A stretch of DNA of 64,000 nt from Ascidiella aspersa (GCA_963924565.1 OZ004612.1:744001-808000); one strand, 5' to 3'; shown: positions 3,734 through 63,190, counted from the stretch's first letter. Numbers and translations are program-made. Notes: generated by a model not told the origin, from the sequence alone.

Positions 3734-30681
<26,948 letters not shown>

Positions 30682-32697: not shown

Positions 32698-34165
32698 TCA
32701 AAGAAGCTCAATAATTAAACATAAGTTTATTTTTTTGTGATTAAAAGCTCGGCAAGTTTTATATTGCCAAAACGTGATTGCTGTGTTAAAACTCTCGACT
32801 GCTTTTTTATGTAGTTTCATGTGCCAATAACATTCACTGATTCCCAAGTGACAACCTGCAATATGCATCGCTGCTTCTTTATCAGGATCCGACGTCGAAT
32901 GAAGTTCGATTTCTTGTACAAAGCATTTCACCGCATTTTCAAACTTGCCTAGTTGTTGATACGAACAACCGACATAACAAATAGGATATATAAGCTATAG
33001 GATATGTATATTCTTCTGGTGACGCTATTTTTATGTATACTTGCTGTTTTTCGAAATAAGCAACAACTTGCTCAGGTTTGTTAAATTCAAAGCTACAAAT
33101 AATGAGTGCCCCATAACATTTTCCAATCATGGCATCTCTCTCTGCAGTTTTATGAAATCCCAAAAACATTCTTAGAGAAGTTTCCAGTGTGTCACAAGCT
33201 TCCTCGTATCGATCAAGTTGGTTAAGACAAACTCCAGCGTTTAATTGCGCATTTGCAACTAACCGCATAAAGTCATGTCCCTGGTGTCCTTCACATGTGG
33301 AGTTTATTTCTTTGAACTGATCTAAAGCTAATTTGTAGTTTTTTGGGTTTTTATTATAATGTATTCCAATACACTCATACATTTAAGCTCTGACAAAAAC
33401 TTTGCTAAGACGAAAATTTTTACTTGAGGGATAGGGCTCATAAGCCTCGTTATACAAATGGCTTGCTCGCAGAAAGTTTTTCTTATTTACGTGAATTTTA
33501 GCACGGAACGCTTTGCATTCAGCAGGAAGGTGACATTTGTGGTTTGGAACGTAATGCTTACTCTTAGAAATATTTTCCGTCGCGTTTTCAGCTTCTGTGT
33601 AGTTTTCCATCTTGATGTGAGTTTGAGCAAGTTCTAGCAACGCAACTGCTGTGTCGTGATCTGAAGTTTCATCGAAGACCTTTTCACGACATTGAAGTAG
33701 ATATTTCTCGCCGTATTCAATGCTTTCTTTGTATTTACCAATTCCACGGTAATACCGAGCAATATAAAGTTGTGCACATTCCCAAACACTGTCGTTTAGA
33801 ACAATGTTGATTATATCGCCAGCCTTCTTCAACATATTCGTATCAACATACAACCCGAACAACTGGCATTGGACTTCTCGGATCTCCATATCTGTGGTGC
33901 TAAAATGCAAAGCTTGTTCGTAACAATTAATCGCATCCAAGTTCATTCCAAAATCATTGTGACATCTTCCCATCATATCCAAGGTAAAAGCCCGACTTGG
34001 ATCGCGGTCCTCCATAAAATCTAAAGCATGTTGAAAGCACTTTAAAGCGGTTTCGAGCTGATTAACTCTACAGTTACAAAAACCTTCAAAAATGCAACTC
34101 AGTTGTTTTGCTTCTTTCAATTCAAATACATTTTTGCTTCTGCATATAAAACCGCTAAAGTGCAA
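32698..34165 (-). pseudogene. 5'-truncated TPR-only paralog of the NTase-TPR gene
   Basis: ORFs 33383-34165, 32939-33382 and 32698-32931 align co-linearly with the C-terminal TPR part of 60181-63190 (CRSKNVFELKEAK versus CKSKNIFELKKAK; LVANAQLNAGVCLNQL is shared). There is an in-frame TAA at 33383-33385, a frameshift near 32935, and no NTase-domain sequence upstream. Confidence 0.8.
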
Positions 34166-35329
34166 TGTGCGGTTTGGTCACATGACTTGGGTTGAAATGA
34201 ATTGTGTTTATTCAACATTTTACTCTAAAATATAGTTATTTACTTAATTTTTTGCGCCTAAAACGATTATCATATATGTTGGGTATTTCTTATTATTAGT
34301 TGATTTTTTACTGAACTTGGTTTTTTATTTTTTTTACTTCGACTTAAACTTAGCTTAAAGCGCCTATAAACTTCGTTTTTGTAGCCTGATACACTCTAGT
34401 AACCAACGTTTTACTGACAATTAATGTCAAAACTTTCAAATAATACAATAGCATTGACACAAAAGCACATACTGTAACGTAATACCTGTGACAATTTAGC
34501 TTTGTAAAATGTTTAACTAGTTAAAAAAATATGAAGACCAGTGTATTACATCCAACTAAAACCTCCAGCCATAATGATAAAACAACAATAAAATGAGTTC
34601 TGTGTCGTCCTGTAATTTATTTAAACTTGAAAAGAACACGACCTTGGGAGTTGCGTTATACATTAATATGTAAGTTTCTTGCAAGTTACATCAATAAATC
34701 TTCACACACGCCCTTTAAAATGAACAGCAATAAATTAAATTCCTGCAAAATTTACTCGAAACTCACCTCAAGGCAATCAATTAATTGCCAATCTAGCATT
34801 GCGTTCTTGTGGCTTCCAGCATGCTTTGGGCTGCAAAGAAGTCAGTTTGTTGCAACGGTTCAACAAACCTTGTTCATTTAAGCGTTTCTACAGCGGGCCT
34901 TGGTTGAAAAATAAGTTGTTGCAGTAATTTAATTCCAGAAAAACGCTAACTTTTATGTTGACCTTCTGTTAGTATGCATTATATTTTGTTGTTACACTGC
35001 GTAGCTGACGTGTTGTATCAAAGGTTGTACAACTCTAGATGTATCGCCACTTTTTTGTCACCTGATGTTTTCATCTACCAAAATTTTGCTGTTGGTTTTG
35101 CTGTTATGTATAATTTTATGTTAAAAGAATTGGATGTAAAAATATATGGAACTGTATAAAAAAATATAATAAAAAGATGTTGCATGCAGAATATTTTGAA
35201 GTTATTTCAAATATTTGTATTAGAAAAGGTTAAAATCTTATCAAAGACGAATTAAATTATGTGTTTACTTTGTTTTCTGGTTGATTGTACATTATGCCTT
35301 GATCGTAAGATTAAGGTTTTATTGACATA

Positions 35330-35990
35330 TTTTGGGTTGTTAGCTGTTGTCTTTGAATACATTTTTTGCGTCAGTTTTTAATTTTGTTTTTGTCTGTTTT
35401 TGTTTTTTTGTTCGAAGAATTTTTTTGTCCTTTTCGGTTGTTTGAAAGATTTTGTTTTGACAGTTCGTGAAGGATTTTTTTGGTTGTTTGAAAGATTTTG
35501 TTCTTGTCGTTTTGGGTTGTTTGAAAGATTTGTTTTTGTCTACTTTGATTGTTGACCGATTTTATTCGTGTCTTTTTTTTTGTTGTTTGGGAGATTTTTT
35601 TTTTGTCCTTTTGGTTGTTTGAAGGATTTTGTTCTTGTATGTTTTTCTGTTTTATTCGTAGGATGTTGTTCTTGTATTTTTAGTTGTTTGAAAGATTTTT
35701 TTGTCCTTTTGGTTGTTTGAAGGATTTTTCTTTTGTCTGTTTTTTCGAAGGATGTTGTTCTTTAATTTCTAGTTGTTTTTAGGATTTTGTTTTGACATTT
35801 CTTAATGGATTTTGTTTTTTTCGGTTGTTTAAACGATTTTGTTATTGTCTTTGCTGGTTGTTTGTAGGATTTTATTATTAGATTTTATGGTTATTTGTAT
35901 GCGATATTTTGTTTTGAACTTTTTGCATGATGAATGATTTTGTTGCTCTAACTTTTTTGTTGTTTGGCGGATTTTCTTGTTGAATAATAA
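35330..35990. repeat. Degenerate T/G-rich low-complexity tandem repeat (TTTGGTTGTTTGAAAGATTTTGTT-like unit)
   Basis: Recurrent GGTTGTTTGAA(A/G)GATTTT units with strong T skew on the + strand. Confidence 0.75.
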
Positions 35991-37992
35991 GTGTTTTGAC
36001 TATTTGTTTAGACATAATTTTATGTACATCTTATGCTTATTGCGTTTGGTTTTTGCTTGGTGGTTTGTTTTGATTATGTTAAAATTGCTTTTGGCGTTTC
36101 AGAATAATTTTATTGTTATCGTAGTGTGTCATTTCTTTCAATAAATAATTTGGAAGTTTATGGCCTGCGTGTTTATTCCACGAAAACTATGTTGTAGTCG
36201 TACAAGTTGTGCGCGCGACTGAAAAAATATTTGAGATTTGTGGCGTTAAATGTATATAACCTATTATATTAGGCCTTTATTGTTCTATAATCTGCAACAT
36301 GACAACATATACTCACAGAAAGCTCAACAAGCTGTTTTTTCTGCGCAGAACATCAACTTCATACCGAAGACTGCAGCCAACAAGGAAAGAGCAGCAAGTT
36401 TAGCGGAGCACGCAGCAGCTGGTAAGTTTTCCTGCGTGGACCACAACACTTGCTTGTTTCACATTTAACGTTGGTTTCAGATACGCAGATTGAAGCGCCT
36501 CTGATTTGATAAAGATGGAGCAACTATACAACGGAATCATCATAATGTTTCACCATCAAGGTAATGGAAAGTTGGTTGTTTAAATGCTCTAATTACCTCA
36601 GAATAAAACGTGCTATAAAAGGGTCGTACTTTCTGCTTAAGTCACAAATCTTAACAAACTTCTTACCCAAGTAAGCAATAACTGTAAATAATGCGAATCA
36701 AAAATTGTGCCTAATATGCCAGTGCAATTAGATTTGTGACAATCGCTCACTTAAATAACTTGCTGAATAGTGTAGTACAATACACTTAATACATAATTAA
36801 GGTATTTGAGTGCGAAATGTGGTGAAGAGAGTTTTCTTGTATTAGAAACATCATACTGTACTTTAGGTATTTTGTTACACCTTTATGCTTGTTTGAAATT
36901 TGCTTTTTCAACGGAGTTTTTTTGAGACATTTTTACAAAAACTGTTTTTAGAATGAGACCGGAATCCATTCGTTTAATGTTTGTTCGTAAAGGAACATTA
37001 CTCTGTCAAACTTTATCCGTTAACTGTATTGTAAAACGCTATTTGTTGGTAAGTTGGATTGTGCTTGTTTAATTTAATAGTTACGTGTAAGGTTAGCGAT
37101 TTACGCAATAATCGGTCTTTTGCGTTTGACATAATTTGCCAAGTTTTCTCTCTCGCCAGTCTGGTGATTGAGCGTCAAGTCATATTAAACTTAACCATCC
37201 TTATTATTTTGCGAAACTGTTATTGGCGACACTTACCGGATTTAATGATATAATCCTAAACATAATCGAATATAACTATAATAATATCGCCGATGCAAGC
37301 AAGAGAAGACAATCCTCGACTACCGGATATATCCCACAAGAGTCGTGATAAGACATAGTATGAAACGAAAGGACAAGCAGGGTTAGTTCTATACAAAGCA
37401 TGTTTACTTAAACTAAATCCATTAATCCCTAGTGAAGTTTTTTGTGTAAATTTGCAAATTTCTAATTTTTTTATTTTGCAGCAATTGTAAAATTTGATAT
37501 TTTTTCGACTGCCCACACAACAGCAATGTTTTTCAGTCCGAAAATTAAGAATTTTTATCATCCCAAATATTTAAAAATGTAACAACCACAAGAGTGAAAT
37601 CTCAAGTTAACTTAGAACATTGACGTCACACGCCAAACTTTAATTAAATGGCGTTTATGTAGCAGACCCGCATTTCATCTACCACATGCATTAATTATTA
37701 TAGATTGTGGGGCTTGTTGGGAGATTAATTATTCGCAAACTTCGTTTTTCACAGAAATAATCCGGTGTCGAGTTGGAGCTTTAAATGTTATTTGCAACAA
37801 CAAAATTTGAATTTAATTAGCGTTTGTTGTTTTTGTAGTTTGTTCACCACTCTCCTCCAAATTCAACAACAACTTCGTATGACGTCATAAAGCATCGTCT
37901 TTAACCAAGTGACGTAACAATAGTGTATTGGCTGTAGCGCGCGTCAACCTCGCTTGTGGGATTTTATATTTATTTGTTAAAATCTCAAACAT

Positions 37993-38208
37993 CGCGTAAT
38001 CTCGTTCGTATGTTGCGCAATATCGGTTAAGCATTACGCAACACCGGTTCTACAATGCGTCGCATCTGTGCTGCGTAAAATCGGTCATTTTTTGCGTAAT
38101 ATTGGAATAATATTACGCAGTTTCAGTTCCATACTGCGTAAAGTCGGTTCATCATTGCATAATCTCTGTTCTAGGTTGCGTAATTCCGGTTTCGTATTGC
38201 GTAATTTT
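37993..38208. repeat. Degenerate minisatellite with a unit of about 21 bp (TTGCGTAAT-N2-CGGTTC core)
   Basis: About 10 units with recurring T(G/A)CG(T/C)AA at roughly 21-nt spacing. Confidence 0.65.
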
Positions 38209-40866: not shown

Positions 40867-41600
40867 GCTGGCAGGTTCTCGGTGTCATGTTTATTTTTAT
40901 GTCCGTGGTCAAGTTGGCAGGTGGTCGTTGGCAGGTTGTCGGTGTCATGTTTTTTTATGTCTGTAGTCAAGTTGGCAGATGGCAGGTGGTGTTGGCAGGT
41001 TGTCGGTGTCATGTTTTTTTATGTCCGTAGTCAAGTTGGCAGGTGGCAGGTTGCCGATGTCATGTTTTTTTATGTCCGTAGTCAAGTTGGCAGGTGGTCG
41101 TTGGCAGGTTGCCGATGTCATGTTTTTTTTATGTCCGTAGTCAAGTTGGCAGGTGGTCGTTGGCAGGTTGCCGATGTCATGTTTTTTTATGTCCGTAGTC
41201 AAGTTGGCAGGTGTTCGTTGGCAGGTTGTCGGTGTCATGTTTTTTTATGTCCGTAGTCAAGTTGGCAGATGGCAGGTGGTGTTGGCAGGTTGCCGATGTC
41301 ATGTTTTTTTATGTCCGTAGTCAAGTTGGCAGATGTCAGGTGGTGTTGGCAGGTTGTCGGTGTCATGTTTTTTTTTATGTCCGTAGTCAAGTTGGCAGAT
41401 GGCAGGTGGTGTAGGCAGGTTGTCGGTGTCATGTTTTTTTTTATGTCTGTAGTCAAGTTGGCAGATGGCAGGTGGTGTTGGCAGGTTGCCGATGTCATGT
41501 TTTTTTATGTCCGTAGTCAAGTTGGCAGATGGCAGGTGGTGTTGGCAGGTTGTCGGTGTCATGTTTTTTTTTTTATGTCCGTAGTCAAGTTGGCAGATGG
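40867..41600. repeat. Compound minisatellite, about 12 units of 51-68 bp (TGGCAGGTTGTCGGTGTCATG-Tn-ATGTCCGTAGTCAAGTTGGCAG...)
   Basis: GTCAAGTTGGCAG occurs 12 times, with a variable internal T-run. Degenerate GGCAGGTGG units continue to about 41860. Confidence 0.95.
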
Positions 41601-43229
41601 CGAGTGTTATGTTGGCAGTTTATGCAGGTGTAGTGTTTTGAGAAATGTTGGGTAGCGTTTGCCAGGTGGCAGTGTATGTTGGCTGGTGGTCGCTGTCATT
41701 ACCAGGTGGCAGGTGGCTAGTGCCATGTTGGCAGTGTTATGTTGTATGTTGGCAGGTGGTCGCTGTCATTACCAGGTGGCCAGTGCCAGTTGACAGTGTT
41801 ATGTTTGCACGTGGCAGGTGGCTGGTGGTCGCTGTCATTACCAGGTGGCAGTGCCATGTTGGCCGATGTTTATTAGCATTGTTGTCAGTGTAATATTGTT
41901 ATTTTTATTTACAGCTTGCCTCTCTACATTGACAATTATATTCAGTCTCTCGTTGATTTAATATTGTTTGTAAAAACTAGGAAGTATTTTAGACAACAGA
42001 GCTGGTCTAGTTACGTCATTATGACGCGTTATCATGTGATGTCACCGCTGCCATAGCAACCATGAGATGACGTCCAAGTTATCAGCAAGTGTCCAATATT
42101 GAGGTAAGCATTTTATAATCACTGTTTCAAGGTGAATCCCTGGAATGCAATAGGTGTTGTGGCTTTGCTAAATTAATTGTTCAACACACCTTACTCATTA
42201 ATGATGAAATGACCATTTTCTGAACATTTTTCTGGCATTACTCACCACTTCATGTTGGTGGCAAACTTTAAAACTTCCCATGATATTTGGAACTTGTTGG
42301 AATTTCATCAAAGACTTTTCATCAGCTGACAGCTTGTTGCCTTTAATTTTTGTAAGTAAAACCAATCATTGTATTTTCTTAATAAGCTTTATTAAAAAAA
42401 TCTAACAATTATGTCGACTAGAGATATTTTGCTTACTTACAGACCAACCGTAGAGCAAAGATAACATGTGGCCCTTTAGTTTTTAATTTTTGCATTTGCT
42501 AGTTTTGAATAATAATAATGATGTAGAGTACTTATTTTCGGACTCTAACCTTTTACGTAGTTCAAGGCTATTTACCTTATTGAACAGGTTTTGACTCCAC
42601 AGTTATTTATAAGATATCCCAGTTTAGACGCTATATTTTATAAAATAAAACATTTTTATGCAATTAGTCTAATATGGCTTTCTGTTAACATTTATATAAA
42701 AGGATTGCTTTGTAGACACATTAGGGGAACTACCCAGGAATTCCTTAAAGGAAATCTAACTGAAGCTTCTAGGGAATTCCCCCATCAAGATAGAATGGAT
42801 TTTTGTTTTTTCAAATTTTTATCAAAATATATCCAGAGAAACAACGCCTTTGTAGATTTTGTGGTTGCTTTAATTTTGTTGATTTAAAAGGCGTTTTATT
42901 ATTTGCACTCAGAACTTCCTGTTGACTTAAAAGTTGTTTCCACAGTTGGTAATGTTAGGAGTTTTATCTGAAGTTTAAAACAGATTTTTATCTTAGAGCT
43001 TGTTATTAGAGAAAAAATGCAAACGTTTTTGAGGTTTGTTTAGAATCTTACCACTTTTTTAACCAGAAACTACACAGCACCAAAGAGTTAGCACGAAAAA
43101 AAAGAAAATTTATATTTATAGGGCCTACCATAATCCTAATGGTCTATATTTTTGGAATATGAAAAAAATATTAAAATTATGAAAAAAATTAATATTCAAT
43201 ATTAATATTCGTCATAAATGACAAAAAAG

Positions 43230-44210
43230 ATAATTTTTAAATGCCTGTAGCATTTACAGTAATGAAACGAGTTCTCTAAATTGAAATTGCAAGTAAGAAA
43301 TAATATGAGAGAGAACACAAAAGTGTGGTAGGATTCTAGACCAGAACCAAAAAGTGTACTTTTGTTATTCCAAATATAAACACACATGTAAACGTAAAAC
43401 ACTTGCAATTGCACATCTATAAAGTTGCGCTAGTAATTCCTAAAGGCTATTTTTGTTATTTTATTGTTCTTTGACACTTGCCACCGTGCTATCTGAACTC
43501 AACTAAATCGAAACTAAAACAAACTGTTATTGCATTTCAAAGTGCATACTGTCAGGTCGCTTATAGATTTATTGTACATTCACATAATTTAGCATAGCTC
43601 GCTTTCAATAAAAGAGCTTACAGCGCAGTAAAAACGGGTCTCGCAAGTAAGGCATGCATCAGTTGACTGTAGTGTTTAATCCAACAGCAGCGTGACACTA
43701 TATAGCACAAGAGCGACTGCGATGGAGATTAGCTGAGTCGAATGTCGGCTAGATTTGCCAGAACGGCCACGAAAGGAAATGAGTATCTAGGTGAAATATT
43801 TAACACTTTACCAGGCGAACACGCTATAATTACAAGCACAAACAGACATGCGTCGTTTCTCTACACACTCTAGTATTTAAACCTTGGTGTAAAGATATCT
43901 ATATTCATACCGATTGCGATAATTTTTAAACGCCTGTAGCATTTACAGTAATGAAACGAGTTCTCTAAATTGAAATTGCAAGAAAGAAATAATATGAGAG
44001 AGCACACGAAAGTGTGGTAGGATTCTAGACCAGAGCCAAAAAGTGTACTTTCGTTATTCCAAATATATTACACTTGTGTTGATTTTAAACACACATGTAA
44101 ACGTAAAACACTTGCAATTGCACTTCTATAAAGTTGTGCTAGTAATTCCTAAAGGCTATTTTTGTTATTTTATTGTTCTTTGACACTCTAGTATTTAAAC
44201 CTCAGTGTAA
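43230..44210. repeat. Direct duplication of about 250 bp immediately upstream of the Kelch gene
   Basis: 43230-43478 and 43920-44187 are near-identical (GCCTGTAGCATTTACAGTAATGAAACGAGTTCTCTAAATTG...). ACACTCTAGTATTTAAACCT occurs at about 43864 and 44183. Confidence 0.85.
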
Positions 44211-44214
44211 AAAA

Positions 44215-44421
44215 ATGGAGACTTTTCCTGAAAAAACAGCTGACAAAGATGAAAGAAAAGAAGATTTAAAAGTGGATGGGTACGCAACAAATTTGTTGCA
44301 AGAACTGAATGAGTGGGTATAATATCATTTGTTTTAGTTATGATTATAAAACGCCAATTTAACTTCTGTTGTGTTTTAAATTAAAGTTTGAATGAAATGC
44401 CATTACAATTAAACTCAATAA

Positions 44422-44459
<38 letters not shown>

Positions 44460-52910: not shown

Positions 52911-54480
52911 ATGATTGTAATTATGGAGGTTGATTTTAAAAGTTGTTCGGAATTTAATTTGAAAGAAAAAAGTGTTTTTGTTGAAGATCATTCTTGCGAA
53001 ATTCTTTAGAAACTGAACGAGTAAGTTGATTTAAAATATCTGTAAATTACTATTTAATTGAAACAGGTGTCCTAGTAAATAAATGTTCTAAATTTATATC
53101 ATTTTTTTCGAGTGGTGCTATCATTAAAAGCTTCTATAGGACCATTTAAAAATGCCTAATTTCAATAATTGAAAAAATACAGATTACTTTTAATGACCAT
53201 CTTTTATGCAATGTCTAGTCATGAAATTGAAACGCAACACATTAACGACGACAGATTAATAACTAAAATGTCAAAAAAGTCGGAATAAGTTTTTGGGATT
53301 GGGTTAAGGTGACAGGTTTTATCGGCCTAATTCTGGCCATTTAGGTTCTTGCGTTATGTTGCTCTAATTTCGGTCTTAAGGCTGGAGTCCATAAAAGCCT
53401 GTTAAACTTTCCAAATGTTTTTGTTTTCTCCAAACTTTTGCTTTTCCATAAAAAAATCACAATCTATTGCTTTTGTGTAGTTATACGTTTTATTTCTAAG
53501 ACGTTGTAATTTAAAATAATAGGCAATAAAACGATGCAGGTTTTAAAACAACTAATAACTGTGTCTTCAGCCTAATCACAAAAATATTACAAACCTTTAT
53601 TTGACTCAAATTTTAAGTTTTTTGTTTTAAAGGCAAAGATCGATTGGTTTGTTTTGCGATGTGGAGATCCTTGTCAACAGCAAAATTTTCCTGGTTCATA
53701 GAAATGTTCTTTCTTCAAGTAGCGAATATTTCAACGCAATGTTTTGTTCAAATGTGAGTTGCGATTTTCAACTAAAGTTCTGTCATGGAAGTACAGTAGC
53801 ACAGAAAGGCATGTATTAAAGCCCATATAAGTAGGTAACATTTTAAATATTCCGTATATGTGTTCAAATGCTTTCCACTTTTATATGGGATTTCACATTC
53901 CTACTATGTCTAACTCAAACCATTATTCTCCAAAAAACATATATTCACTTTTGGAATTAAATAATAGAAAAAATTGAGTATTTTGTTTTAGAAAGTTTTC
54001 GATTTTGTATAACATTTTATTTAATGGGCTAAGGTTGTGGTTCTCGAACTTTTTTGCCTACTTAATATTGGAAGGATCCATAATTTTAGAAAAAAACAAA
54101 ACAATATCTTATTAAATCATACAAACTATTTTCTTTACTGTTAAAATATTTATTATCAATAAACTTCAATGATGTGAATTGTGAGCCGGTAAAACTTTCT
54201 TATCACCTGAAGTTTACTTTTTTGTTCATTATTTACGCCTTAACATTTTTCTCCTAGTTTTAATTTAGGAACTCTTATTACTTAAAGTAACTTAAAATCA
54301 TATTCATTAAAACTTTTGTTTTTTCAGATGTTGGAGCAAAATTTCCAGAAAGTCGAACTTAACCAATTGAATGAAGTTGCCGTTGAAAACGTGTTGGAAT
54401 ATATTTACACTGGATGTATTTATTTAACTGAAGCGAACATAACCAACATCTTGCAGACAGCCTCCATAATGTTGATTAAA
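52911..54480 (+). pseudogene. Truncated BTB(-Kelch) paralog, first three exons only
   Basis: Exons 52911-53020 (in-frame TAG near 53007), 53633-53753 (FCDVEILVNSKIFLVHRNVLSSSSEYFNAMF) and 54328-54480 (VLEYIYTG) mirror exons 1-3 of the upstream Kelch gene. No BACK or Kelch exons are seen before the PHLDB duplicate begins. Confidence 0.8.
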
Positions 54481-55653
54481 GTAAGCGCTTGTTTTTAAAA
54501 AATTACCAAATAAAGCTTTTTAAAATGAAACCTTAATAATAATTAATCAATCACTTGTCCCCATTCATAAAAATGCTTCCTATACTGGAGGTTATACCTT
54601 TATATTTGCACTTTATTTTTTGAAATGCAAAACTAGAGATGTTTGATAATATCGGATTGAAGCCAATACCCGGTGCAAGTGGTACAGCCATGGCTCAATA
54701 TGTCCATTTGTTCTTATAAATACCAAAAAGTTTGTGAAAAAAAATAAACAGTTTATTCTTATGAAAACCCTAAGCAGAATGCTGTTCAAAATTTGTAAAA
54801 ACTGTCACATTTGTTAAAAAAATAATTCATTTACTTAATCATAGATTTTGATTTACAATGTTAAATTTTAATTCAAGTTGCTTGTGTGTTACAACTTTGT
54901 TGAAATCTAAAATTACAATTGACCTGCAAACATTTCTTTGTAACTTAAAGTTGTAATACCAATCTAAATATATGAACAAACAAAACAAAAATTATATTTT
55001 TTTGTCTGTGTTTTGTGTATTTTTTAGACAAGGTTTTTGTAAATATTTTTTTTGCAATTTTGATAAACACTAAATTAGACTTTCTGATAAGTTACTCATT
55101 TACTTCGCAGTTTTCAAAAGAATGTATTTGCTCAACTATGGACCTCCAGGTTTTGCAGAGACTTTGTGCTTCATAGAATCTACAGAAACTAAACAGGTAT
55201 TTTTAGGTAATGAAAGCCTAAATGTCAATCAATAAATTAGGCATGCAAGTTTTACAAATAATATGTAAGCTGTTGCCACCAGGCATCATATTATTCCCCC
55301 CCAAACAGTTTTAACCCACAATTTTTAGGCCGTTTTTTAGGAAATACGATTTTATACACTAATTTAATAAAAATTGTAGAAGTATAATTTTTACTTTTTT
55401 GAACTGATTGTTTTGTTGTTGGTAGTGAACCGTACAAACATTAGGACAACCAAATATAGTCCTCAGTTGTTTTACAATCAGCATTTCGAATAATTTGTTA
55501 CAATTTTGTCTTATATATATTTTGTCTCTTTGCCTGATTTTAAATTAAAGTTGTAAACCTACGTTTCCCAACATCTAAATTATTTTTTTAAACTTTAGAT
55601 TTTTGTATTTTACTTCTCAGTATATAAGATGGCTACCGCATTCTGGTGTTACT

Positions 55654-55705
55654 TATTAACCCTGATGAGGTCAGCTGGTATCTGCTGCCGAAACGTCGGT
55701 TTATA
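55654..55705 (+). ncRNA. Minimal type I hammerhead ribozyme
   Basis: UAUUAACC-CUGAUGA-GG(U)CAGC-UGGUAUCU-GCUGCC-GAAA-C-GUC-GGUUUAUA. It shows the full core, stem II, palindromic ACGU stem III, a GUC cleavage triplet (predicted cut after 55697) and stem I AACC/GGUU. Confidence 0.8.
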
Positions 55706-55807
55706 CTTTGTTTACACCAGAAAAAACGATTTCTATATATTTCTATACAATATGTTGCCTGGTGGAACTAACTCTATTATCTTCTCAATGGTAACATTTA
55801 TTTTCAG

Positions 55808-56389
<582 letters not shown>

Positions 56390-58442
56390 TACGAAGCCTG
56401 CAAACAGTACAAATGTTTGAAGTAAACTATGCTTAAAGTAAATATACTAAATATTACCGTACAAACGAAAATAAATTATCGAAACGCTAATTATAAAGAA
56501 ACTCTAATATATGAATACAATGAAAGAAAAGTCCTTTTTTACTACGCTAACCCCCCTTCTTTTCGCAAAGTACGTTTGTTAACTAACGCCAGCATAAACG
56601 TAAAAACGTTGCAATTTGAATATTCTACAATCATCGAATTTCTTTTCGTGTTTCGCCAGCTATCTTTGTCAATAAATTACTTTTTTTGAAACTTGTTTGC
56701 TTTTATAGATTGACAATTCATCTAACATCACTTCGTTAACAAGTCGCACTTACACAACAAATGCTGGCTTGTGTAAAGTTATTTTCGCTGAGCCTGGGCT
56801 AGAATTACAACCGTTCTCTGTTTGTATATACTGCAAAGTATACTCGGTTGAAATACAGTTAAATATAGAACGATATTTTTTTTACTTTTCAAACGCCGGT
56901 TAAAGCTGAAAGTAACCGATTGCCTTCGATTGCAGTTTCTGATTAGGAAAGCCGAAAATACAGCAATACCTTTCAATCACTGTACATCAGCTCGGATAAA
57001 ACAGCATAAATAACCAAAAAAACAGCACAACTCAATTGGCCAACCAAAAAACTAGCCGATTCAACCTATATAGTGCTCTTGTTTAGATATTTTACATTAT
57101 AAGCCAATATAGATACGAACTTGAGTCTTTAAAAACGTCCATGTTTGCAAAAATCAAAACATTATGTGGTAGTATCGGCATCCATCAGTCCCCGGACAAG
57201 ATCCAATAAGATATTTATCGAACTAATATCCTCTTTTAGTCACGACCAGACAATTGAAGTGCTGGGAGACTTTTGTTGCTCGTTAGTTGTTTAGTTTACA
57301 AAACGCGCCAACTCTAGGAAAAAAGTATCCGTCGTTTATCAAAATCGTTTTATCAATCAGCCGTAAGAAAACCTATAAGTTGCCCTTTTCTTTGTCTGGT
57401 GATATCATTTGCTAAACTTTGACAATAGTCATCTATTTAAAATGCACTTTATTTTGTAAACTGTAAATTCGAGATAGCAGATAAAACGATTTTCTGCATT
57501 TAAATCAATATTCTTCGTATTTTGTTACCTTACTAGACTTGTTTTTTTCGCATCTATAATCCATTTTATGTTTCAGTTAAAATCTGTGAACATCAAACAA
57601 TTTTTTTTAAAACAAAATAGTTTTAATTCGTTTAGACTTTCCTTTTAGAAAATATTTTAAGTTGTAATATCTTGTAATTATTGTTCCTAAGTAGATTTTT
57701 CGAATTGTTGGCGAAAGCAATTGAGTTTATTTTTATATTTTTTTTATTCAGGTTTCAAACTGATGCAGAATTATTTACAACTTCCTTAACAAAAATATTG
57801 TAAGTTATTAAAAGCTCTGCACATTTGTGGGATTACCTTTTGGCAATGAATGGCATGTAGTTGCAGCAAAAAATCAACTTTATGAAAGAAATATCAATTA
57901 AGAAAACGGACATTTTAGTTAAAAATGTGTGATTTGTGACAATTAGTTCGTTTCTAGTTAATTTTCTGTTATAAATTTGTCTGCCGGCGGTTTCTGTGTT
58001 TCTTCACATTTTTATCTTGAAAAATCAACAGAAATCCGTTTATGAAAGTTTTAATCTTATGACTTTGCCGGTTTTTGCGGACACTTTCAACGTATAAATA
58101 AACTAGTATACTAGCGGTTACTAAACTTTAGCTGCCAATACAAAATAAATTTTTAAAAATGACCCTTCAGCGGGTATTTTACCATTTTTGTTGGTTTAGG
58201 TGCGTTTAGAGCATTGCGTAGTTACTTGACCAGGTTACTTGAGAAAACTTTGAAAGTTTTGTTGTTTTTATTTAATCACTGCCTCGATTGTAGGAGGTGT
58301 TACATAACAATACCGAGCGCTGCGCTGTATTGTGACGCGTGTTGGCAAACAATGGCTTCAGGTCTAGAATGTGACGTCATCGCTAAGCGCGATAAACTCT
58401 GGTTTTGCTTGAAATCGCTTGATATTTAACTTGTATGCGGAA

Positions 58443-58473
<31 letters not shown>

Positions 58474-58516
58474 CAAAAAAATTATTCTACAGTAAAACTT
58501 GTTCGATAATTACAAC

Positions 58517-58764
58517 TAGGGATGTACGATACTTAGCGTGTGGATCCGATATCGATATCGATATTTTAAACCAAAACTATCGCGATCCGATCCGATACCT
58601 ATGACGTCATTAGTTTTGTTATCAAACAAAAAAAACAATTAAAACGTTAAAAAATAAATTTTCTCATGTTATTGGGCTAAATTACCACCGTGATATCAAA
58701 TGAGCACCGATACTTCCACTTGGTATCAGGTATCGGCCCAGATCCGATATTATCGGACATCCTA
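58517..58764. mobile_element. hAT-superfamily MITE with a perfect 8-bp TSD
   Basis: TIRs TAGGGATGTACGATA and TATCGGACATCCTA. TSD ATTACAAC at 58509-58516 and 58765-58772. Internal CCGATA/TATCGG repeats. Confidence 0.85.
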
Positions 58765-59014
58765 ATTACAACGTTATAAATCATACTAGAACTCAACAAA
58801 ACCAACATGCAATTAAGAATTAATAGCATGGTAATAACCACTGCTCAATCAACTGAACTATCAACAAAGTGAACAAAATATGTTTCATTAAAATTTGAAA
58901 AAAAGTTTAATTTGTTTAGATTTTAAATGAATAACATATTAGGAACAACACACATACATATATATATACCTAGCTTTATATTGAACATTCTAAAATCATA
59001 TTGATGCTGTAAAT

Positions 59015-59753
59015 CAGTGGTCGGCAAACTGTGGTCCGAGCTATTTTTTAATAGTCTGATTTTATCACTATGTAGTTGTGGGCCGCATTAATGCTGTACA
59101 TATATTGTATTGCATTTTTGAAGTTGGTCTGGCTAAGAAATGTTATAATGTCTCAACGTGGTTCAGGTCCGCTTGCCAAAAGTGTACCTGAGGGGTATAT
59201 AATTTTTAAAACTATAATTTTTGCCAACTTTTTTCGCATCTACATTCTTCGTTTTATAGTATGCTTTACACTATGGCTTGGCAGAGTTTTCGGCATGTTG
59301 AGGCGTCGTCTAATATTTCACCATTTCTTGGTGTCCACAGCCTAACGCTGTGTGGACTTGGACCCCTAAAAATATATCTAGTTTATGTTTTTTTTGTGTA
59401 GCATTGTAATATTGCTATTGTATCGTAAGTAATATTTATACAAATTTTACTTCAAGATTAACGTAATGTATGCAATTTTGCGTTTCGTGCGAACGTTTCA
59501 CATATAGTGGTAATTTTGAAAGTATACACGTCTAACGTAAACGATTCGCCAAATGACGTTTAGCTTCATATTTGCGCACGAGTTTGTTCGAGAACATCAA
59601 GTATTTCCAAGAACAATTGTTTTTGACGTAAATTAAAACAAATATTCTAAATCATCCACTGTTTTTCCGGCTGTAGTGGTTTTACATAGTGAGCCTTTAA
59701 TAGCTCGGAAAAAAGTGCTTTGGGCCGCGACAAAAATAGTTTGCCGACCGCCT
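59015..59753. mobile_element. hAT-type non-autonomous element
   Basis: TIRs CAGTGGTCGGCAAACT and AGTTTGCCGACCGCCT. TSD-like CTGTAAAT/ATGTAAAG. The uninterrupted site is visible in the paralogous sequences at about 32568 and 60036. Confidence 0.75.
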
Positions 59754-60180
59754 ATGTAAAGTATCAAAAATTAAAATTTATACATTTTTTGGTTTATACT
59801 TTCTAGAATGTGACGTCATAGCTAAGCTCGATAAACTCTTGTTCGCTTGATATTTAACTTGTATGCTAGAATAGGCGACCACTGCTCTACCAACTAAACT
59901 AACAACAAAGTGAACAAAATATGTTTTAATAAAAATAAAACAAAGTTTAATTTTTTCGAATTTAATTAAATAATATGTCAGGAACATCACAGATCTTCTT
60001 AACTTTGTCAATAACATCCTAAAATCATATTGACGCTGTAAATAATTGTTGAAAGGCACTGGGGGTCGAAACAAACGATCGAAAAATAGTTTTTTGGCAA
60101 TAACAGGAATACTTAAGACAATTGGGGGACATCAACTCATTCAAAGGAGCTCAATAATTAAACTGGAACGAAGTTTATTT

Positions 60181-61121
60181 TCAATGATTAAAAATAAGCT
60201 CGGCAAATTGTATCATTTTGTCACATTCTTTAATTGCCCCACTGGCCAAAGGATGGTTGATATTTCTGCACAACTTGATTGCTGTTTTCGAACTCTGCAT
60301 TGCTTTGTCAGGTAGCTTCATCTGCAAATAACATCCACTGATTCTCAAGTGACAATCTGCAAAACACATTGCTATTTCTTTGTTAGATTCCGATGTCGAA
60401 TGAAGTTTGATTCCTTGTTCGAAGCATTTCATTGCTTTTTCACACTTGTTAAGTTGTTGATAGGAACAACCGACATAATAAAACAAAACAAATTGTTCTT
60501 CTAATGGAACTAGTTTTATATATTCTTGCCATTTTTTAAAACAAAAAACAACTTGCTCAGGTTTGTTAAATTCAAAGCTGCATCCAATGAGTTCCCTACA
60601 ACATTTTCCAATCATGGCATCTCGCACTACAGTTTTATGAAAACCTACAAGCATTCCAAGGGAAGTTTCCAGTGTATTATAAGCTTTATCGTATCGTTTG
60701 AGTTGGTTGAGACAAACTCCAGCGTTTAATTGCGCATTTGCAACTAACATCATGAAGTCATGAAGAGATGTCCATCACATATGGAGATTACTTCTTTAAA
60801 ATAATCTAACTTTAATTTGTTGTTATCATTATTCACTGCAATACACATATACATATCAGCTCTGACAAGAACTTTGCGTCGCTGAAATTGTTTACTTGAT
60901 GGGTACAGCTCATAAGCTTCCTTGTACAAATCACTTGCTCGTAGAAAGTTTTTCTTTATTCGGTGGATTTTAGCCCAGAGCCGTTTACATTCAGCAGAGA
61001 GATAATATTTGTTGTTTGGAACATAATGTTTACTCTTTGAAATATTTTCCGCCATTTTAATTGCATTTTCAGCTTCTGTGCAGTTTTCCATAGCGATGTA
61101 AGTTTCACCAAGATCTACCAA
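60181..61121 (-). pseudogene. Frameshifted C-terminal TPR continuation of the NTase-TPR gene
   Basis: ORFs 60750-61121 and 60181-60753 continue the TPR array. Relative to the 33-kb paralog there is a 22-nt deletion at about 61128 and a 1-nt deletion at about 60764. Confidence 0.75.
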
Positions 61122-63190
61122 CGCAATTGATCGAAGGCCTTTTCACGACATTGAAGTAGATGTTTCTCGCCGTATTTAATGCTTTCTTTGTATTTACCAA
61201 TTCCATTATAGTATCGTGAAACATGTTGTTGTGCACCTTCTGAAACATTGTCATTAAGTACAAGGTTAAGCATGTTACCAGCATGGTCAAATAAACCTCC
61301 ATAAACATACACTCCGAACAAATAACGTTGGACTTTTTGCCTAACCATATCTGTGCTGTCTGAATGCAAAGCTTTTTGGTAACAATTGATTGCATCCAAG
61401 TTCAATTCAAGCTTATCGTAACAACGTCCCATGTCACATAAAATTGCAGCCCGCATTGGATCGTTTTCTTGCATAAAATCTAAAGCATGTTGAAAGCAAA
61501 TTAAGGTGGTTTTATGCTGTTTGAGTTGATTGTAACAAAAGCCTTCCATATACGTTATGTTTGCTTTTGCTTTTTTTAACTCAAATATATTTTTACTTTT
61601 GCATTTTTTTATGACCTTAATTGCTTCGTTATACAAACGTAAAGACATAAGCGAAAATATTCCACGAATCCAAGTTGATTTTTTTGGTTCAGACTGCTTG
61701 TTGGTGAACGTTTGCAAAGTGGAAGCTAAAGAGAAAAATTCAACAATTCTTGATTTTCCAAATACTTCGAGCAACAAATCATGAAAAGGTTCGAATCTTG
61801 CGTCAAGATAATCGCACTGGCCGGAGTATTTGAAGTAAACCCGCAACCTAACTTCGCAGGCGAAAGCAAGTGCGAACATAAAATCATCAGATTGTTGTTG
61901 TGATATTTGGCTTGGAGTCAATTCCCGCAGAATATCGAAAGAAGACGACGATTTGCAATTATGTCGTCTACCAAGTGCTGCTATAAACAAAGTGACGCTT
62001 CGAAATACGACGCTTTTGATGTTTACTGTGTTTTCAATATACATCAAAGTCAAGCATTCATCTATGTTGAATTTGTCAGTATCCTCCTTTAGTTGTTTTT
62101 CTAAATTCTCATCGAAACGAGATTGTTGCAAGATGTCAATTGTTTTTATCTTCATTTGATCGTAGATTGCATCATCGCCACAAACAAAGCATATTTTAGT
62201 TAAAATATCACCCAAGTGGTAACCGTTTTTAAGGTCAATATCCCGTCCAAGATATTCAAGCATTTCAGAAACAGGTTTGATCAGCTCAGTATCCCAGGGT
62301 TTGTTCGGTGTAGCTGACCTACCAAGTGGGAACTTGCAAGCAAAAGTAACCATTCCATCAAACGAAATACCACGAGGTGTGTGCGCATCAAAGAACCAGC
62401 CCTTACCAATATTTTCCTCAGGCTTATTAATGAATGGCAACGAAACGTGAGGTATTAGTGTTTCACCAAAGTTTACAACCACAACTTGAAACATCACAGA
62501 CACCCAACGGAAATATTGAAGTACTTCCTCATAATCTGAACGATTTTGAACACCTTCTTCCAACAAATAGATGTGCTCGAAATCTGAATAAGGAGTGATT
62601 TCATTTCTAGCAAGTGATCCCATTCCAACCAAAGCATATTTACAAGGAGCTGGACCTGTAGCTTCCACACAAAACTCCATTATATCTGCCATGAGCCATT
62701 TGTATTTTTCTGTGATGATTTTTTGTAAACTCTCTATCAGAATAGTTCTACGTTGATCGGTTTCTGCAAGTGAAATTGCTTTTAGCGCAATATCCTTTAT
62801 CCAACACCGAAAGTCCTTCACTTTAGTGACAGATGCTTCAACCAGTTGCTTCAAACTGTCCACACTGGTGTCATGTCTGCCAGCAAGTTGAAGAACACGC
62901 GAACAAAGCTCAACGAGATCTTTCTCAACCTCAGCAACGTTGTCAGGTTTCCTCACAACAGCTGCGTTTAACAACACAGCGCTGCGAATAAGAGATATTT
63001 TCTTGTCTCTGCCCTCGGGTAATACATCAGCTATTTCGTGATATGCCCGGCCGAGTTGATGGATAACTTTGGCGGATTGTCTTACATCACGTTCCTTTCC
63101 GTTTGCGTAACATAATGACTTTAATTCCTCCGCAAGTTCAAAAGTTTTAGCTTTGTAAATACTGGCTTTAGTATCTGAGCACCCTTGCAT
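61115..63190 (-). CDS. Intronless nucleotidyltransferase (DUF294/GlnD-GlnE-like) plus helical domain plus TPR-repeat protein, 691 aa
   Basis: Long intact ORF with the pol-beta-superfamily signature ALVGMGSLARNEITPYSDFEHIYL (G191-S192, D203, E205). It is followed by a helical region (NIKSVVFR...SSFDILREL...ACEVRLRVY) resembling the NTase-associated substrate-binding domain, then TPR-like repeats (CFQHALDF; DAINCYQKAL; GKYKESIKYGEK). The ATG context is AAAACATG, with a splice acceptor 21 nt upstream. Confidence 0.8.
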   Translation of the reverse strand: MQGCSDTKASIYKAKTFELAEELKSLCYANGKERDVRQSAKVIHQLGRAYHEIADVLPEGRDKKISLIRSAVLLNAAVVRKPDNVAEVEKDLVELCSRVLQLAGRHDTSVDSLKQLVEASVTKVKDFRCWIKDIALKAISLAETDQRRTILIESLQKIITEKYKWLMADIMEFCVEATGPAPCKYALVGMGSLARNEITPYSDFEHIYLLEEGVQNRSDYEEVLQYFRWVSVMFQVVVVNFGETLIPHVSLPFINKPEENIGKGWFFDAHTPRGISFDGMVTFACKFPLGRSATPNKPWDTELIKPVSEMLEYLGRDIDLKNGYHLGDILTKICFVCGDDAIYDQMKIKTIDILQQSRFDENLEKQLKEDTDKFNIDECLTLMYIENTVNIKSVVFRSVTLFIAALGRRHNCKSSSSFDILRELTPSQISQQQSDDFMFALAFACEVRLRVYFKYSGQCDYLDARFEPFHDLLLEVFGKSRIVEFFSLASTLQTFTNKQSEPKKSTWIRGIFSLMSLRLYNEAIKVIKKCKSKNIFELKKAKANITYMEGFCYNQLKQHKTTLICFQHALDFMQENDPMRAAILCDMGRCYDKLELNLDAINCYQKALHSDSTDMVRQKVQRYLFGVYVYGGLFDHAGNMLNLVLNDNVSEGAQQHVSRYYNGIGKYKESIKYGEKHLLQCREKAFDQLRW

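Follow-up and report, generated by a model that had tools for sequence, protein, structure and literature searches.

Plant NLR clusters are tandem arrays that evolve by birth and death with pseudogenes, in which unequal exchange and gene conversion produce mosaics and the solvent-exposed part of the repeat sensor is under diversifying selection, with a signalling domain that is conserved. The vertebrate IFIT proteins are TPR-only innate-immune RNA sensors of non-self molecules. TPR proteins are built from 34-residue units (helix A, turn, helix B) stacked into a right-handed superhelix, whose concave groove is lined by the A helices. Nucleotidyltransferases of the DUF294/GlnD type, which have the polymerase-beta fold, show a conserved glycine-serine loop and, after it, an acidic D-x-E pair. 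Fungal NOD-like receptors (Podospora and others) carry TPR, ANK, or WD repeat domains (Dyrka et al. 2014, PMC4986451), and peptide-binding TPRs are described from HOP (TPR1/TPR2A) and kinesin light chain, with positions 2, 5, 6, 9, 12, and 13 of TPR helix A lining the concave groove and being the most variable (Magliery and Regan 2005, PMC1261162).

Here, we analyzed 64,000 nt of Ascidiella aspersa DNA (GCA_963924565.1 OZ004612.1:744001-808000; hereafter, the window; coordinates are window positions unless C2, C6, or C9 is given). The window contains two copies (A and B) of a gene family with at least 60 copies, whose single-exon genes encode proteins of ~1010 aa combining a predicted DUF294-type nucleotidyltransferase with TPRs; no publications on this family were found in the literature searched, and a search for RNA runs returned none. 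As far as fungal NLRs are described in Dyrka et al. 2014 (PMC4986451), they resemble this family in hypervariable repeats with a conserved remainder, in recombination or concerted evolution among repeats and loci, and in positively selected TPR sites on the concave side, which in our case are predicted. In the same account, the fungal proteins differ in having a NACHT/NB-ARC NTPase, where this family has a DUF294-type nucleotidyltransferase and no NACHT/NB-ARC by Pfam, and highly conserved 42-residue units instead of degenerate 34–45-residue units with low internal similarity; unlike in the fungal NLRs described there, diversity here lies between paralogs of a tandem array in an animal genome. 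The variable concave positions are shared with the peptide-binding TPRs as these are described; however, HOP and kinesin light chain TPRs belong to single-copy housekeeping adaptors, whereas in this family they differ between dozens of paralogs, with pN/pS >1. Arrays, pseudogenes, mosaics, repeat diversification, and a conserved module are all shared with plant NLR clusters, but those have LRR sensors, an NB-ARC core, and proven immune function, whereas the putative sensors here are TPRs and any such function would be an analogy. Bacterial DUF294/GlnD-type enzymes are alike in matching PF03445 above the cut-off and in the near-invariant glycine-serine and acidic residues (57 sequences), but in this animal genome the module has expanded and is joined to a TPR array. 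IFITs lack an enzyme domain, have another repeat arrangement, and resemble this family only at the level of generic TPR sequence.

Domain architecture of the family

Intact members comprise a conserved N-terminal half with the predicted DUF294-type nucleotidyltransferase, followed by 11 degenerate TPR repeats. Among the 40 fetched loci, 29 contain an open frame of ≥990 aa; 45 family loci were analyzed out of at least 71 matches, so that true nearest relatives or donors may be absent from the sample. In the intact member L013, Pfam identified DUF294 (PF03445; 30.7 bits vs a cut-off of 21, residues 146–218) and TPR_12, TPR_2, and TPR_1 (94.5, 80.5, and 69.8 bits), and TPR profiles score above the gathering cut-off in A, B, and L013. 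Alignment A1 comprises 57 sequences with 28–82% identity to L013; all of them have G189 and G191, and at least 90% retain S192, D203, and E205. The family thus carries both the glycine-serine loop and the D-x-E motif. Based on the Pfam match and these motif residues, the enzyme half is predicted to be a DUF294-type nucleotidyltransferase. Clavelina homologues bear the UniRef name 'Protein-PII uridylyltransferase N-terminal domain' (Pfam PF03445).

A sequence search of solved structures with the N-terminal 520 aa returned no relative. Among solved structures, the family profile scores best by sequence with engineered or consensus TPRs, TONSOKU, and kinesin light chains (E 6e-40 to 1e-16), and IFIT1 chains are among its PDB sequence matches (E 1e-9 to 2e-8); the PADLOC match of the family is weak (E 0.007). 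None of the 18 Pfam matches of L013 (E up to 0.01) is a NACHT or NB-ARC domain; therefore, the family is not an NLR, although it is NLR-like in its evolution.

Structure of the two window copies

Both window copies are dead members of this large, tandemly arrayed family. The features of copy A and its flanks are as follows:

30142–32324, minus strand: further downstream flank of A, colinear (up to 32401) with B 55787–58442 (blastn)
32260–32446, minus strand: conserved non-coding element just past AATAAA (alignment of 40 copies)
32325–32640, minus strand: A tail, 3' UTR-like and of the 'A/C type', containing 32436–32628 (alignments)
32698–34145, minus strand: copy A, TPR-only remnant, pseudogene (ORF list, pairwise alignment, family-frame translation, Pfam)
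34146–35400, minus strand: sequence directly 5' of the A remnant (own-genome search)

Family homology in copy A begins near alignment codon 530, and the N-terminal half, with the whole enzyme domain, is missing. The remnant still matches TPR_12 (59 bits vs a cut-off of 30.1), but contains an in-frame TAA at 33383–33385, a frame change near 32935, and, compared to B, a 50-nt deletion near 32767. The sequence directly upstream has 72–81% matches upstream of family genes (e.g., C6:2234049-2234932, C6:1817520-1818402), and its counterpart in other members sits ~1–2 kb 5' of the ATG. Because such leader-type sequence adjoins the remnant, A is a copy that has lost an internal segment, comprising the 5' intron/leader region and the entire enzyme domain, and not an end-truncated duplication. 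The A tail, with AATAAA at ~32457–32462, shares 94–95% identity with the copy C tail (C6:840130-840369) and 93% with a patch in B. Further downstream, the flank has only seven genome matches, all on C6 and in the 3' direction of places holding family genes, and its divergence from B is patchy (K2P 0.044 to 0.216 per segment).

Copy B is full-length, and its 3' region is composite:

55787–58442, minus strand: B downstream flank, colinear with A 30142–32401 (blastn, per-segment K2P)
58443–58842, minus strand: ~400-nt insertion interrupting the native B tail, partly another repeat (locus layout, genome match)
58843–59019, minus strand: B tail 2, native, colinear with the L011 and L016 tails (blastn, tail tree)
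59020–59799, minus strand: old dispersed repeat (transposable element, TE) between UTR and tail (genome search)
59804–60094, minus strand: B tail 1, ectopic ~291-nt A/C-type patch (alignments, tail tree)
60095–60183, minus strand: native L011-like 3' UTR, first 89 nt after the B stop (alignment)
60181–63190, minus strand: copy B, full-length family gene, pseudogene (ORF list, alignment, family-frame translation)

The enzyme-domain ORF of copy B is intact (691 aa), but the frame is broken in the TPR half by two deletions, one of 22 nt (between 61130 and 61129) and one of 1 nt (between 60767 and 60766). Pfam matches include DUF294 (33.1 bits vs 21, residues 145–225), TPR_12 (34.4 bits vs 30.1), and, in the third ORF, TPR_1 (37.3). 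Copy B is 93.7% identical over 3.2 kb to L011, located 1.44 Mb away. Perfect unitigs of run X1 cover 59720–59876 (157 nt, the 3' junction of patch and TE), 60564–60738, and 61172–61519, and a unitig at 60719–60887 crosses the 1-nt deletion gap-free with one differing letter. Logan unitigs over this locus are short, many show paralog differences, and X1 is possibly the same sample as the assembly, so that its support for the locus is weak.

Divergence of coding and tail sequences between A and B

Over a 126-aa TPR stretch (A 33680–34057, B 61139–61516, minus strand), 75 residues are identical (59.5%), exactly the ~60% originally counted by hand, with 74.9% nucleotide identity over 378 nt. The A tail (32436–32628) and its counterpart in B (59905–60096), which had been put at ~10 differences in 190 nt, differ at 10 of 192 aligned nt with one gap column (K2P 0.054), and a wider tail core (32400–32634 vs 59870–60094) at 14 of 225 nt (K2P 0.065). 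TPR coding DNA (A 32790–34145 vs B 60290–61604), by comparison, differs at 288 of 1305 nt (K2P 0.264). This contrast between coding sequence and tail was confirmed not to be due to chance (14/225 differing tail sites vs ~79/249 synonymous sites; Fisher p = 7e-13).

It is no measure of selection. The original prediction took coding sequence outpacing its flank as a sign of diversifying selection, and named dS at or above dN, and variable sites not enriched on the concave surface, as findings that would speak against it. In the pair, dS exceeds dN both in the TPR region (432 codons; dN 0.238, dS 0.414) and in the 126-aa stretch (dN 0.286, dS 0.49), with dN/dS of 0.57–0.58 over the region, which removes the basis for reading selection from the contrast; enrichment at concave sites, in contrast, was found (see below). 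Synonymous divergence (dS 0.41–0.60) is itself 6–9 times the tail distance (0.054–0.065). The clustering of changes between scaffold residues was borne out: at the concave positions (2, 5, 6, 9, 12, and 13, set by motif position after Magliery and Regan 2005, PMC1261162, and not by coordinates), the A-B pN is 0.393 (pS 0.236), vs 0.165 elsewhere.

Ancestry of the copies and origin of the B patch

In a TPR tree of 44 sequences, the groupings B+L011, A+L052, and A+L052+C each received UFBoot 100, and the smallest clade with both A and B comprises 23 of the 44 tips. By this tree, A and B are not sisters; B pairs with L011, and A with L052 and C. In nine of eleven 50-codon TPR windows, B and L011 are 94–98% identical (91% and 85% in the remaining two), and the nearest copy of A shifts from window to window. 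Maximum likelihood trees were built for four gene segments, and every one of them is incompatible with the remaining three (delta lnL 183–1264; 12/12 AU p ≤ 3.3e-4); nearest relatives thus differ significantly between neighbouring parts of the same locus. Exchange among paralogs is pervasive, so that every member is a mosaic.

The 3' region of B shows such a structure directly. Homology with L011 spans 60095–63267 and 58843–59799, and 59800–60094 is missing in L011. The first 89 nt of the B UTR match L011 at 92% and A at 84%; L011 and L016 pass from the UTR directly into the shared TE, and L016 has the same UTR-TE-tail order as B without the patch. The TE (2461 first-look candidates; ~65–80% matches on many contigs and both strands) is common to B, L011, and L016, and among the 40 loci was present only in the latter two. 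In B, tail 1 stands in place of ~16 nt of native sequence and brings its own copy of the conserved element; it is this patch that was compared with A in the original prediction (59905–60096). The tail tree separates {A, C, B tail 1} from the rest (UFBoot 100) and recovers a clade {B tail 2, L011, L016} (UFBoot 98). Because the branch of B tail 1 is long (0.06), neither A nor C is the direct donor. Tail 1 is absent at the same site from the closest relatives of the recipient, as expected of an ectopic transfer. The insertion interrupting the native tail has an 88% match at C2:35384933-35385181.

Most probably, the contrast reflects mosaic ancestry, with an imported A/C-type tail in B, and the family as a whole is separately subject to diversifying selection on TPR concave positions. 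A and B are ~25% apart in TPR coding DNA and ~5% in the tail because the compared segments differ in ancestry: the gene body, first 89 nt of UTR, TE, and native tail of B come from the L011 lineage, the TPR region of A belongs with L052 and C, both nearby, in one clade, and a ~291-nt piece of A/C-type tail was copied into the B 3' UTR, possibly where short A-rich microhomology allowed templated insertion or gene conversion. The tail comparison thus set the A tail against a recently imported patch; against B tail 2, the identity of the A tail is 78%, on par with the coding sequence. Sequence exchange among many paralogs had been the alternative offered in the original prediction, and the patch absent from the sisters of B, the different clades, and the incompatible segment trees point to it as the source of the contrast.

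The direction of the patch event depends on L011 and L016, both sister-type copies without the patch, and two independent losses would fit as well. Tail 1 could then be ancestral to B, L011, and L016, deleted in the latter two and kept A/C-like in B by later local conversion, a history that we consider unlikely. A 14-nt motif (GTATAAAYCAAAAA-like) does occur at the 5' edge of the A tail and the 3' edge of B tail 1, with a single copy in L011, as a direct-repeat deletion would leave; yet two losses, or one loss and further exchange, are needed, and conversion is still required for 93% identity to A when tail 2 is at 78%. Whether the tail was ancestral or imported, the contrast results from exchange and not from selection. 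A single patch event leaves unexplained the stretches of the farther downstream B flank that are very near to those of A (K2P 0.044 and 0.098).

The family-wide tail and its conserved element

Part of the tail is present 3' of 37 of the 40 fetched loci. The conserved element has two cores: core 1 (~32375–32446) contains a tRNA-like D-arm string, and core 2 (~32260–32341) contains TGACGTCA-like and TTACGTAA palindromes. The median K2P of core 1 (0.116; 27 intact genes) is lower than the synonymous divergence in any coding segment. This conservation past AATAAA in nearly all members, and the partial overlap of the wider tail core (32400–32634) with the element, would fit purifying selection on a functional 3' UTR or regulatory element, instead of exchange, as the reason why the tails are alike. 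This is quite improbable, given that 32436–32628 lies mostly upstream of the element, and that this upstream part is recognizable in only ~10 of 40 other loci at 70–80%, compared to 92–95% among A, C, and the B patch; in the present sample, this part seems to be under no more constraint across the family than neutral DNA. Nor does constraint explain two lineages' tails in one locus, the second being the native B tail at 78%.

A young SINE/MITE-like mobile element, inserted separately next to A, B, and C, is very unlikely. Tail 1 is an insertion in B relative to its sisters, bounded by a short A-rich direct repeat, and the D-arm string is tRNA-like, but within the window neither ARAGORN (tRNA genes) nor Rfam gave a hit, and in A, C, and most members this sequence belongs to the colinear flank of the family. 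Of 41 genome matches of the tail, 40 are on C6 and one on C9, and 39 are on the minus strand, that of most family genes; those matches that were checked against gene positions are immediately 3' of a family gene, on its strand. The tail is thus not a dispersed repeat, and a SINE/MITE-type identity was rejected for want of unlinked dispersed copies and a tRNA-derived head.

It is highly improbable that A and B arose by direct duplication, with one age throughout, and that their TPR coding sequence outran the flank through positive selection: concave pN exceeds pS in the pair, as it does across the family, but the excess of dS over the tail distance, the dN/dS below 1, the separate, fully supported TPR clades, and the absence of B tail 1 from its sisters all argue against it. 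An assembly chimera of collapsed paralogs at locus B is barely conceivable, since, in spite of a highly repetitive family and short unitigs with paralog differences, perfect unitigs from what may be the source sample cover the patch/TE junction, and the 1-nt deletion is spanned without a gap.

Diversification of the predicted concave groove

Mosaic ancestry accounts for the contrast between coding sequence and tail; a second process, independent of exchange, acts in the intact family, with replacements outpacing synonymous changes at concave codons of helix A. The repeat register was fixed by Pfam in 8 of 11 repeats (R2, R5, R10; R1, R6, R7, R8, R11), and those of R3, R4, and R9 were set by eye (R3 and R9 have no Pfam match, R4 only a weak, unrelated one). 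Using a codon model (a custom script in which branch lengths were kept at the values of nucleotide trees), omega was 0.31–0.37 in the enzyme half and 0.65–1.0 in the TPR segments. Sites with omega >1 (posterior ≥0.95) numbered 3/464 in the enzyme half, and 13/129, 9/146, and 7/171 in the three TPR segments. In the eight Pfam-registered repeats, 17 of 59 concave sites were of this class vs 4 of 197 elsewhere (p = 5.6e-9), and in all 11 repeats, 21/81 vs 5/272. The M2a likelihood test was significant in the enzyme half as well (2*delta lnL 43.6, 1.2% of sites), indicating that recombination inflates the test; we therefore put weight on the distribution of sites and on tree-free counts.

These data support diversifying selection at the predicted concave groove of the family TPRs, with a nearly uniform enzyme half. 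Hence, of the original interpretation, exchange stands and selection deduced from the contrast does not, whereas family-wide selection on the groove is upheld by other evidence. The groove is presumably ligand-binding, and a putative repeat sensor under diversifying selection beside a conserved module would be an NLR-like trait; an immune or recognition role may be suggested by analogy, and the earlier phrase 'typical of immune receptors' is likewise an analogy, both window copies being pseudogenes. In tree-free counts over 406 pairs, concave codons showed dN above dS in 262 pairs, and the remaining codons in 4. Among 14 disjoint pairs, pN/pS was 1.54 at concave codons (p = 1.4e-4) vs 0.56 elsewhere, with a pS of 0.135 in both classes.

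The gene family and the state of copies A and B

The family consists of single-exon genes that join a DUF294-type nucleotidyltransferase to TPR repeats. With the 691-aa frame of copy B as query, 71 matches were found in its own genome, mostly on the minus strand of contig C6 (0.7-2.7 Mb), with intron-free frames of ~1010-1040 aa. More distant copies lie on C2, C3, C7, and C9. We retrieved 40 loci and two neighbours; the analysis covered 45 of at least 71 matched places, with no outgroup among them, and the trees are without outgroup rooting. Frames of at least 990 aa are present in 29 of the 40 retrieved loci. The other 11 (L011, L012, L016, L019, L020, L025, L030, L033, L039, L043, and L048) were left out of the codon analyses and used for nearest-neighbour counts and trees only. 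Column identity across the 29 intact genes averages 0.81-0.95 in alignment columns 31-510, 0.50-0.60 at columns 541-690, and 0.60-0.83 past them.

A protein search gave 881 proteins at E <= 0.001; among those with a name, uncharacterised proteins from the ascidian Clavelina lepadiformis come closest (~43% identity). Glycine-serine and acidic residues of the DUF294-type module are kept across 57 aligned sequences. By sequence, the enzyme half has no match to solved structures at E up to 1 and a single weak match in PADLOC, and the TPR half resembles engineered or consensus TPRs, TONSOKU, and kinesin-light-chain TPRs. A full-text literature search (supplementary lists outside it) held no description of an animal nucleotidyltransferase-TPR family, and none of the 12 sequencing runs listed for the stretch is an RNA run.

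Both copies in the window are pseudogenes, with the following lesions (those in B are relative to A and the family):

32698-34145, minus strand: copy A, TPR half only
33383-33385: in-frame TAA in A
near 32935: frame change in A
near 32767: 50-nt deletion in A
60181-63190, minus strand: copy B, full-length
between 61130 and 61129: 22-nt deletion in B
between 60767 and 60766: 1-nt deletion in B

Copy B retains an open frame of 691 aa that includes the first TPRs and matches the DUF294 nucleotidyltransferase profile (33.1 bits against a cut-off of 21); two more frames come after it. In A, family homology begins near codon 530, and the DNA upstream of it (34146-35400) matches, at 72-81%, DNA that other members carry 1-2 kb 5' of their ATG. 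Because far-upstream family DNA adjoins the remnant of A, the leader and enzyme half were lost through an internal deletion of ~2.5 kb or more. The sister of B, locus L011 (C6:2242080-2248143), is a pseudogene too: its TPR half contains a premature stop, and its open frame is 761 aa long. The lesions of B are absent from L011, and the two copies were disabled independently.

Coding and tail divergence between A and B

The window is AT-rich, with few long ORFs and no runs of N. Aligned on the minus strand, A (32325-34145) and B (59804-61604) share 74.6% identity over 1894 columns, and colinear flank segments farther 3' of the two copies reach 74-95% in pairwise alignment. The original prediction had counted ~75 identities in a 126-aa TPR stretch and ~10 differences per ~190 nt of the adjacent non-coding tail, and both counts were reproduced: 75/126 residues are alike (59.5%; nucleotide identity 74.9% of 378 nt), and the tail differs at 10/192 nt (K2P 0.054). 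A wider tail core differs at 14/225 nt (K2P 0.065), and K2P is 0.264 for the TPR coding DNA.

One explanation offered for this contrast was selection that drives coding sequence past its flank, which the synonymous sites contradict. Using Nei-Gojobori counts, dN is 0.238 and dS 0.414 over 432 TPR codons, and 0.286 and 0.49, respectively, in the 126-aa stretch, with dN/dS of 0.57-0.58 throughout. With dS above dN and 6-9x as large as the tail distance (Fisher p = 7e-13), positive selection is ruled out as the source of the A-B contrast. In this pair, pN/pS is 1.66 at concave codons (TPR motif positions presumed to line a ligand groove) versus 0.50 at others. When genes lie in multigene arrays, a little-diverged flank next to strongly diverged coding DNA does not count as evidence of positive selection until synonymous sites and the ancestry of every segment have been checked.

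Origin of the tail patch in B

A tRNA gene or known RNA was rejected as the nature of the tail, since the window yielded no tRNA gene and, at the gathering score, no Rfam match. A dispersed repeat was also ruled out: 40 of 41 tail matches in the genome lie on contig C6 (one on C9), and each match that was compared with gene places sits just 3' of a family gene. The minus strand, that of most family genes, carries 39 of the 41. Only three copies exceed 90% identity over the full tail length, namely those of A, B, and a further family locus, C (C6:840130-840369). The segments 3' of B are arranged as follows:

59804-60094: tail patch compared with the A tail in the original prediction
59020-59799: old transposable element
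58843-59019: native tail of B
58443-58842: second insertion, ~400 nt, which breaks the native tail; an 88% copy lies on contig C2

The closest relative of B is L011 (C6:2244580), 1.44 Mb off, which is 93.7% identical over 60095-63267 and 81% over 58843-59799, and is without a counterpart of 59800-60094. In L011 and L016 the stop codon is followed by a ~89 nt UTR, the transposable element, and the tail. First-look candidates for the element number 2461, spread over both strands of many contigs (~65-80% identity), and among the retrieved loci this insertion is found in B, L011, and L016 only. Copy B keeps the same order, with a native tail 78% identical to the A tail; extra in B is a ~291-nt A/C-type tail between UTR and element, in place of ~16 nt.

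In a tree of 14 tails, A, C, and the B patch stand apart from the rest (UFBoot 100), and the native tail of B groups with L011 and L016 (UFBoot 98). The absence of the patch from L011 and L016, together with this tree, indicates that the A tail had been set against an imported patch; against the native tail of B, non-coding identity is in line with coding identity. Given the long private branch of the patch (0.06), its donor would be a relative of A and C, and neither of these two copies themselves. Loss of the patch from both L011 and L016 would leave the same distribution and is less parsimonious than a gain in B, which we infer as the direction of the event. The gained patch may have arisen by templated insertion or gene conversion at the A-rich microhomology found at both junctions.

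Unitigs of the sequencing run X1 are perfect on 59720-59876, which spans the patch/element junction, and on 60564-60738 and 61172-61519. A further unitig (60719-60887) differs by one letter and is gap-free across the 1-nt deletion, and one lacks a base at 60173. These unitigs lend slight backing to the assembly of locus B, and X1 may be the source sample.

Some portion of the tail is present after 37/40 loci. Following AATAAA, an element at 32260-32446 (minus strand) is conserved downstream of family genes, with equivalents in L012-L052. An alignment of 40 copies revealed a tRNA-like D-arm string, a TGACGTCA palindrome, and a TTACGTAA palindrome; median K2P of core 1 (27 intact genes) is 0.116, under the dS of every coding segment. 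The compared tail shares just its 3' end with this element, which therefore leaves the A-B contrast unexplained. The element may serve in 3' end processing, or as promoter or enhancer of something downstream.

Sequence exchange among paralogs

The other explanation originally proposed, sequence exchange among paralogs, is borne out by the imported patch in B and by segment trees that reject one another. A TPR tree of 44 sequences gives UFBoot 100 to each of B+L011, A+L052, and A+L052+C. The smallest clade with both A and B holds 23 tips, and the two copies are not sisters. The best match of A per 50-codon window shifts among L052, C, L045, L031, L036, and L035, and L016 has the flank type of B and a different TPR clade. 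The flank of B farther out is patchy when compared to A, with K2P of 0.044 and 0.098 next to 0.216.

Maximum likelihood trees were compared for four segments, the enzyme half and three TPR thirds (columns with any gap removed; codons kept 464/480, 129/150, 146/170, and 171/180, respectively). Each segment rejects the trees of the other three (delta lnL 183-1264; AU p <= 3.3e-4 in 12/12). The gene segments vary more than two-fold in synonymous divergence, with a median dS of 0.19 for the enzyme half, 0.44 at columns 541-690, and 0.24 in the remainder, which suggests homogenisation of the enzyme half by conversion and retention of old first-TPR lineages.

Evidence for diversifying selection at presumed TPR groove positions

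Codon models were fitted with a home-made script (GY94 + F3x4), using the branch lengths of each segment nucleotide tree and one scale factor.

Table. Codon models by segment (2*delta lnL, M2a vs M1a)
Segment; M0 omega; M2a share with omega>1; 2*delta lnL; codons with posterior >=0.95
Enzyme half; 0.37; 1.2%; 43.6; 3/464
TPR third 1; 1.00; 31%; 58.2; 13/129
TPR third 2; 0.83; 18%; 64.2; 9/146
TPR third 3; 0.65; 7%; 74.6; 7/171

Even for the enzyme half the M1a/M2a likelihood ratio test reaches significance, and it was therefore taken as inflated by recombination and set aside as proof of selection; we relied on the location of the selected sites. The 34-residue register used Pfam coordinates for 8 of 11 repeats (the other three were placed by eye), and concave positions were defined by TPR motif position in place of 3-D coordinates. 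Passages of Magliery and Regan (2005, PMC1261162) give positions 2, 5, 9, 12, 13, 33, and 34 as the most variable, concave-face TPR positions, and positions 2, 5, 6, 9, 12, and 13 as ligand contacts in HOP.

In the 8 registered repeats, 17/59 concave codons are selected vs 4/197 others (p = 5.6e-9), and the motif-based counts for all 11 repeats are 21/81 and 5/272; three selected sites of the TPR region lie beyond the repeat frames. Column entropy averages 1.5 at concave positions and 0.7 elsewhere. Tree-free counts gave dN > dS in 262/406 gene pairs at 66 concave codons and in 4/406 at 308 other TPR codons; among the 12 closest pairs, concave codons have a ratio of 2.45 and the others one of 0.92. 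Across 14 disjoint gene pairs, pN/pS is 1.54 at concave codons (p = 1.4e-4) and 0.56 elsewhere, with pS of 0.135 in both codon classes alike, so shared history is controlled for. Diversifying selection on the presumed TPR groove is supported for the family by these sequence patterns. The predicted selection on a ligand-binding surface is thus supported family-wide by the concave-position evidence, but not by the flank contrast from which it had been drawn.

Comparison with receptor families

The family behind A and B evolves like an immune-receptor repertoire, with a tandem array, frequent pseudogenes, pervasive mosaicism, a near-uniform enzyme half, and replacements that exceed synonymous changes precisely at the TPR groove positions. 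This evolutionary mode is like that of NLR-type receptor families; in fungal NLRs, according to passages of Dyrka et al. (2014, PMC4986451), TPR repeats recombine and positively selected sites are on the concave side. However, no NACHT or NB-ARC domain was found in the family with Pfam, and it is therefore no NLR; what is conserved here, unlike in NLRs, is a DUF294-type transferase. A part in immunity or recognition may be proposed by analogy only.

It is conceivable, though we think it rather unlikely, that the family is an undescribed animal recognition receptor in which the TPR groove senses ligands and controls the nucleotidyltransferase, diversified by exchange and selection. Such a receptor would sense varied pathogen or allogeneic molecules with its fast-diversifying concave groove, and the DUF294-type nucleotidyltransferase would be the signalling or effector module. 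Its diversity would come from positive selection and patchwork exchange among >60 arrayed copies, for which A, B, and other dead copies could be a reservoir of donor segments. The parallel with NLRs and cGAS/OAS-type sensors would be one of function, with different parts. If it is a true receptor system, the family is a directly testable candidate.

Other features of the window

In 55400-56000, which includes a suspected minimal hammerhead ribozyme (55654-55705) where the duplicated block ends, Rfam yielded no match at E up to 1. Several repeats and compositional features were recorded elsewhere in the window:

8271-8668: 27-nt tandem unit, 14.7 copies with 98% matches, perfect-looking, within a 159-aa minus-strand ORF (8229-8708) with a predicted 9-residue peptide repeat
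35400-35720: low-complexity T-rich sequence; plus-strand short ORFs with internal repeats (the 34-36 kb bin has an AT skew of -0.24)
40869-41861: tandem repeats, G-rich and ~1 kb in all, whose periods of 64-66, 130, and 196 nt are nested; GC skew is strong (+0.29)
43229-43478 and 43918-44187: direct repeat of ~250-270 nt, 89.6% identity, ~690 nt apart
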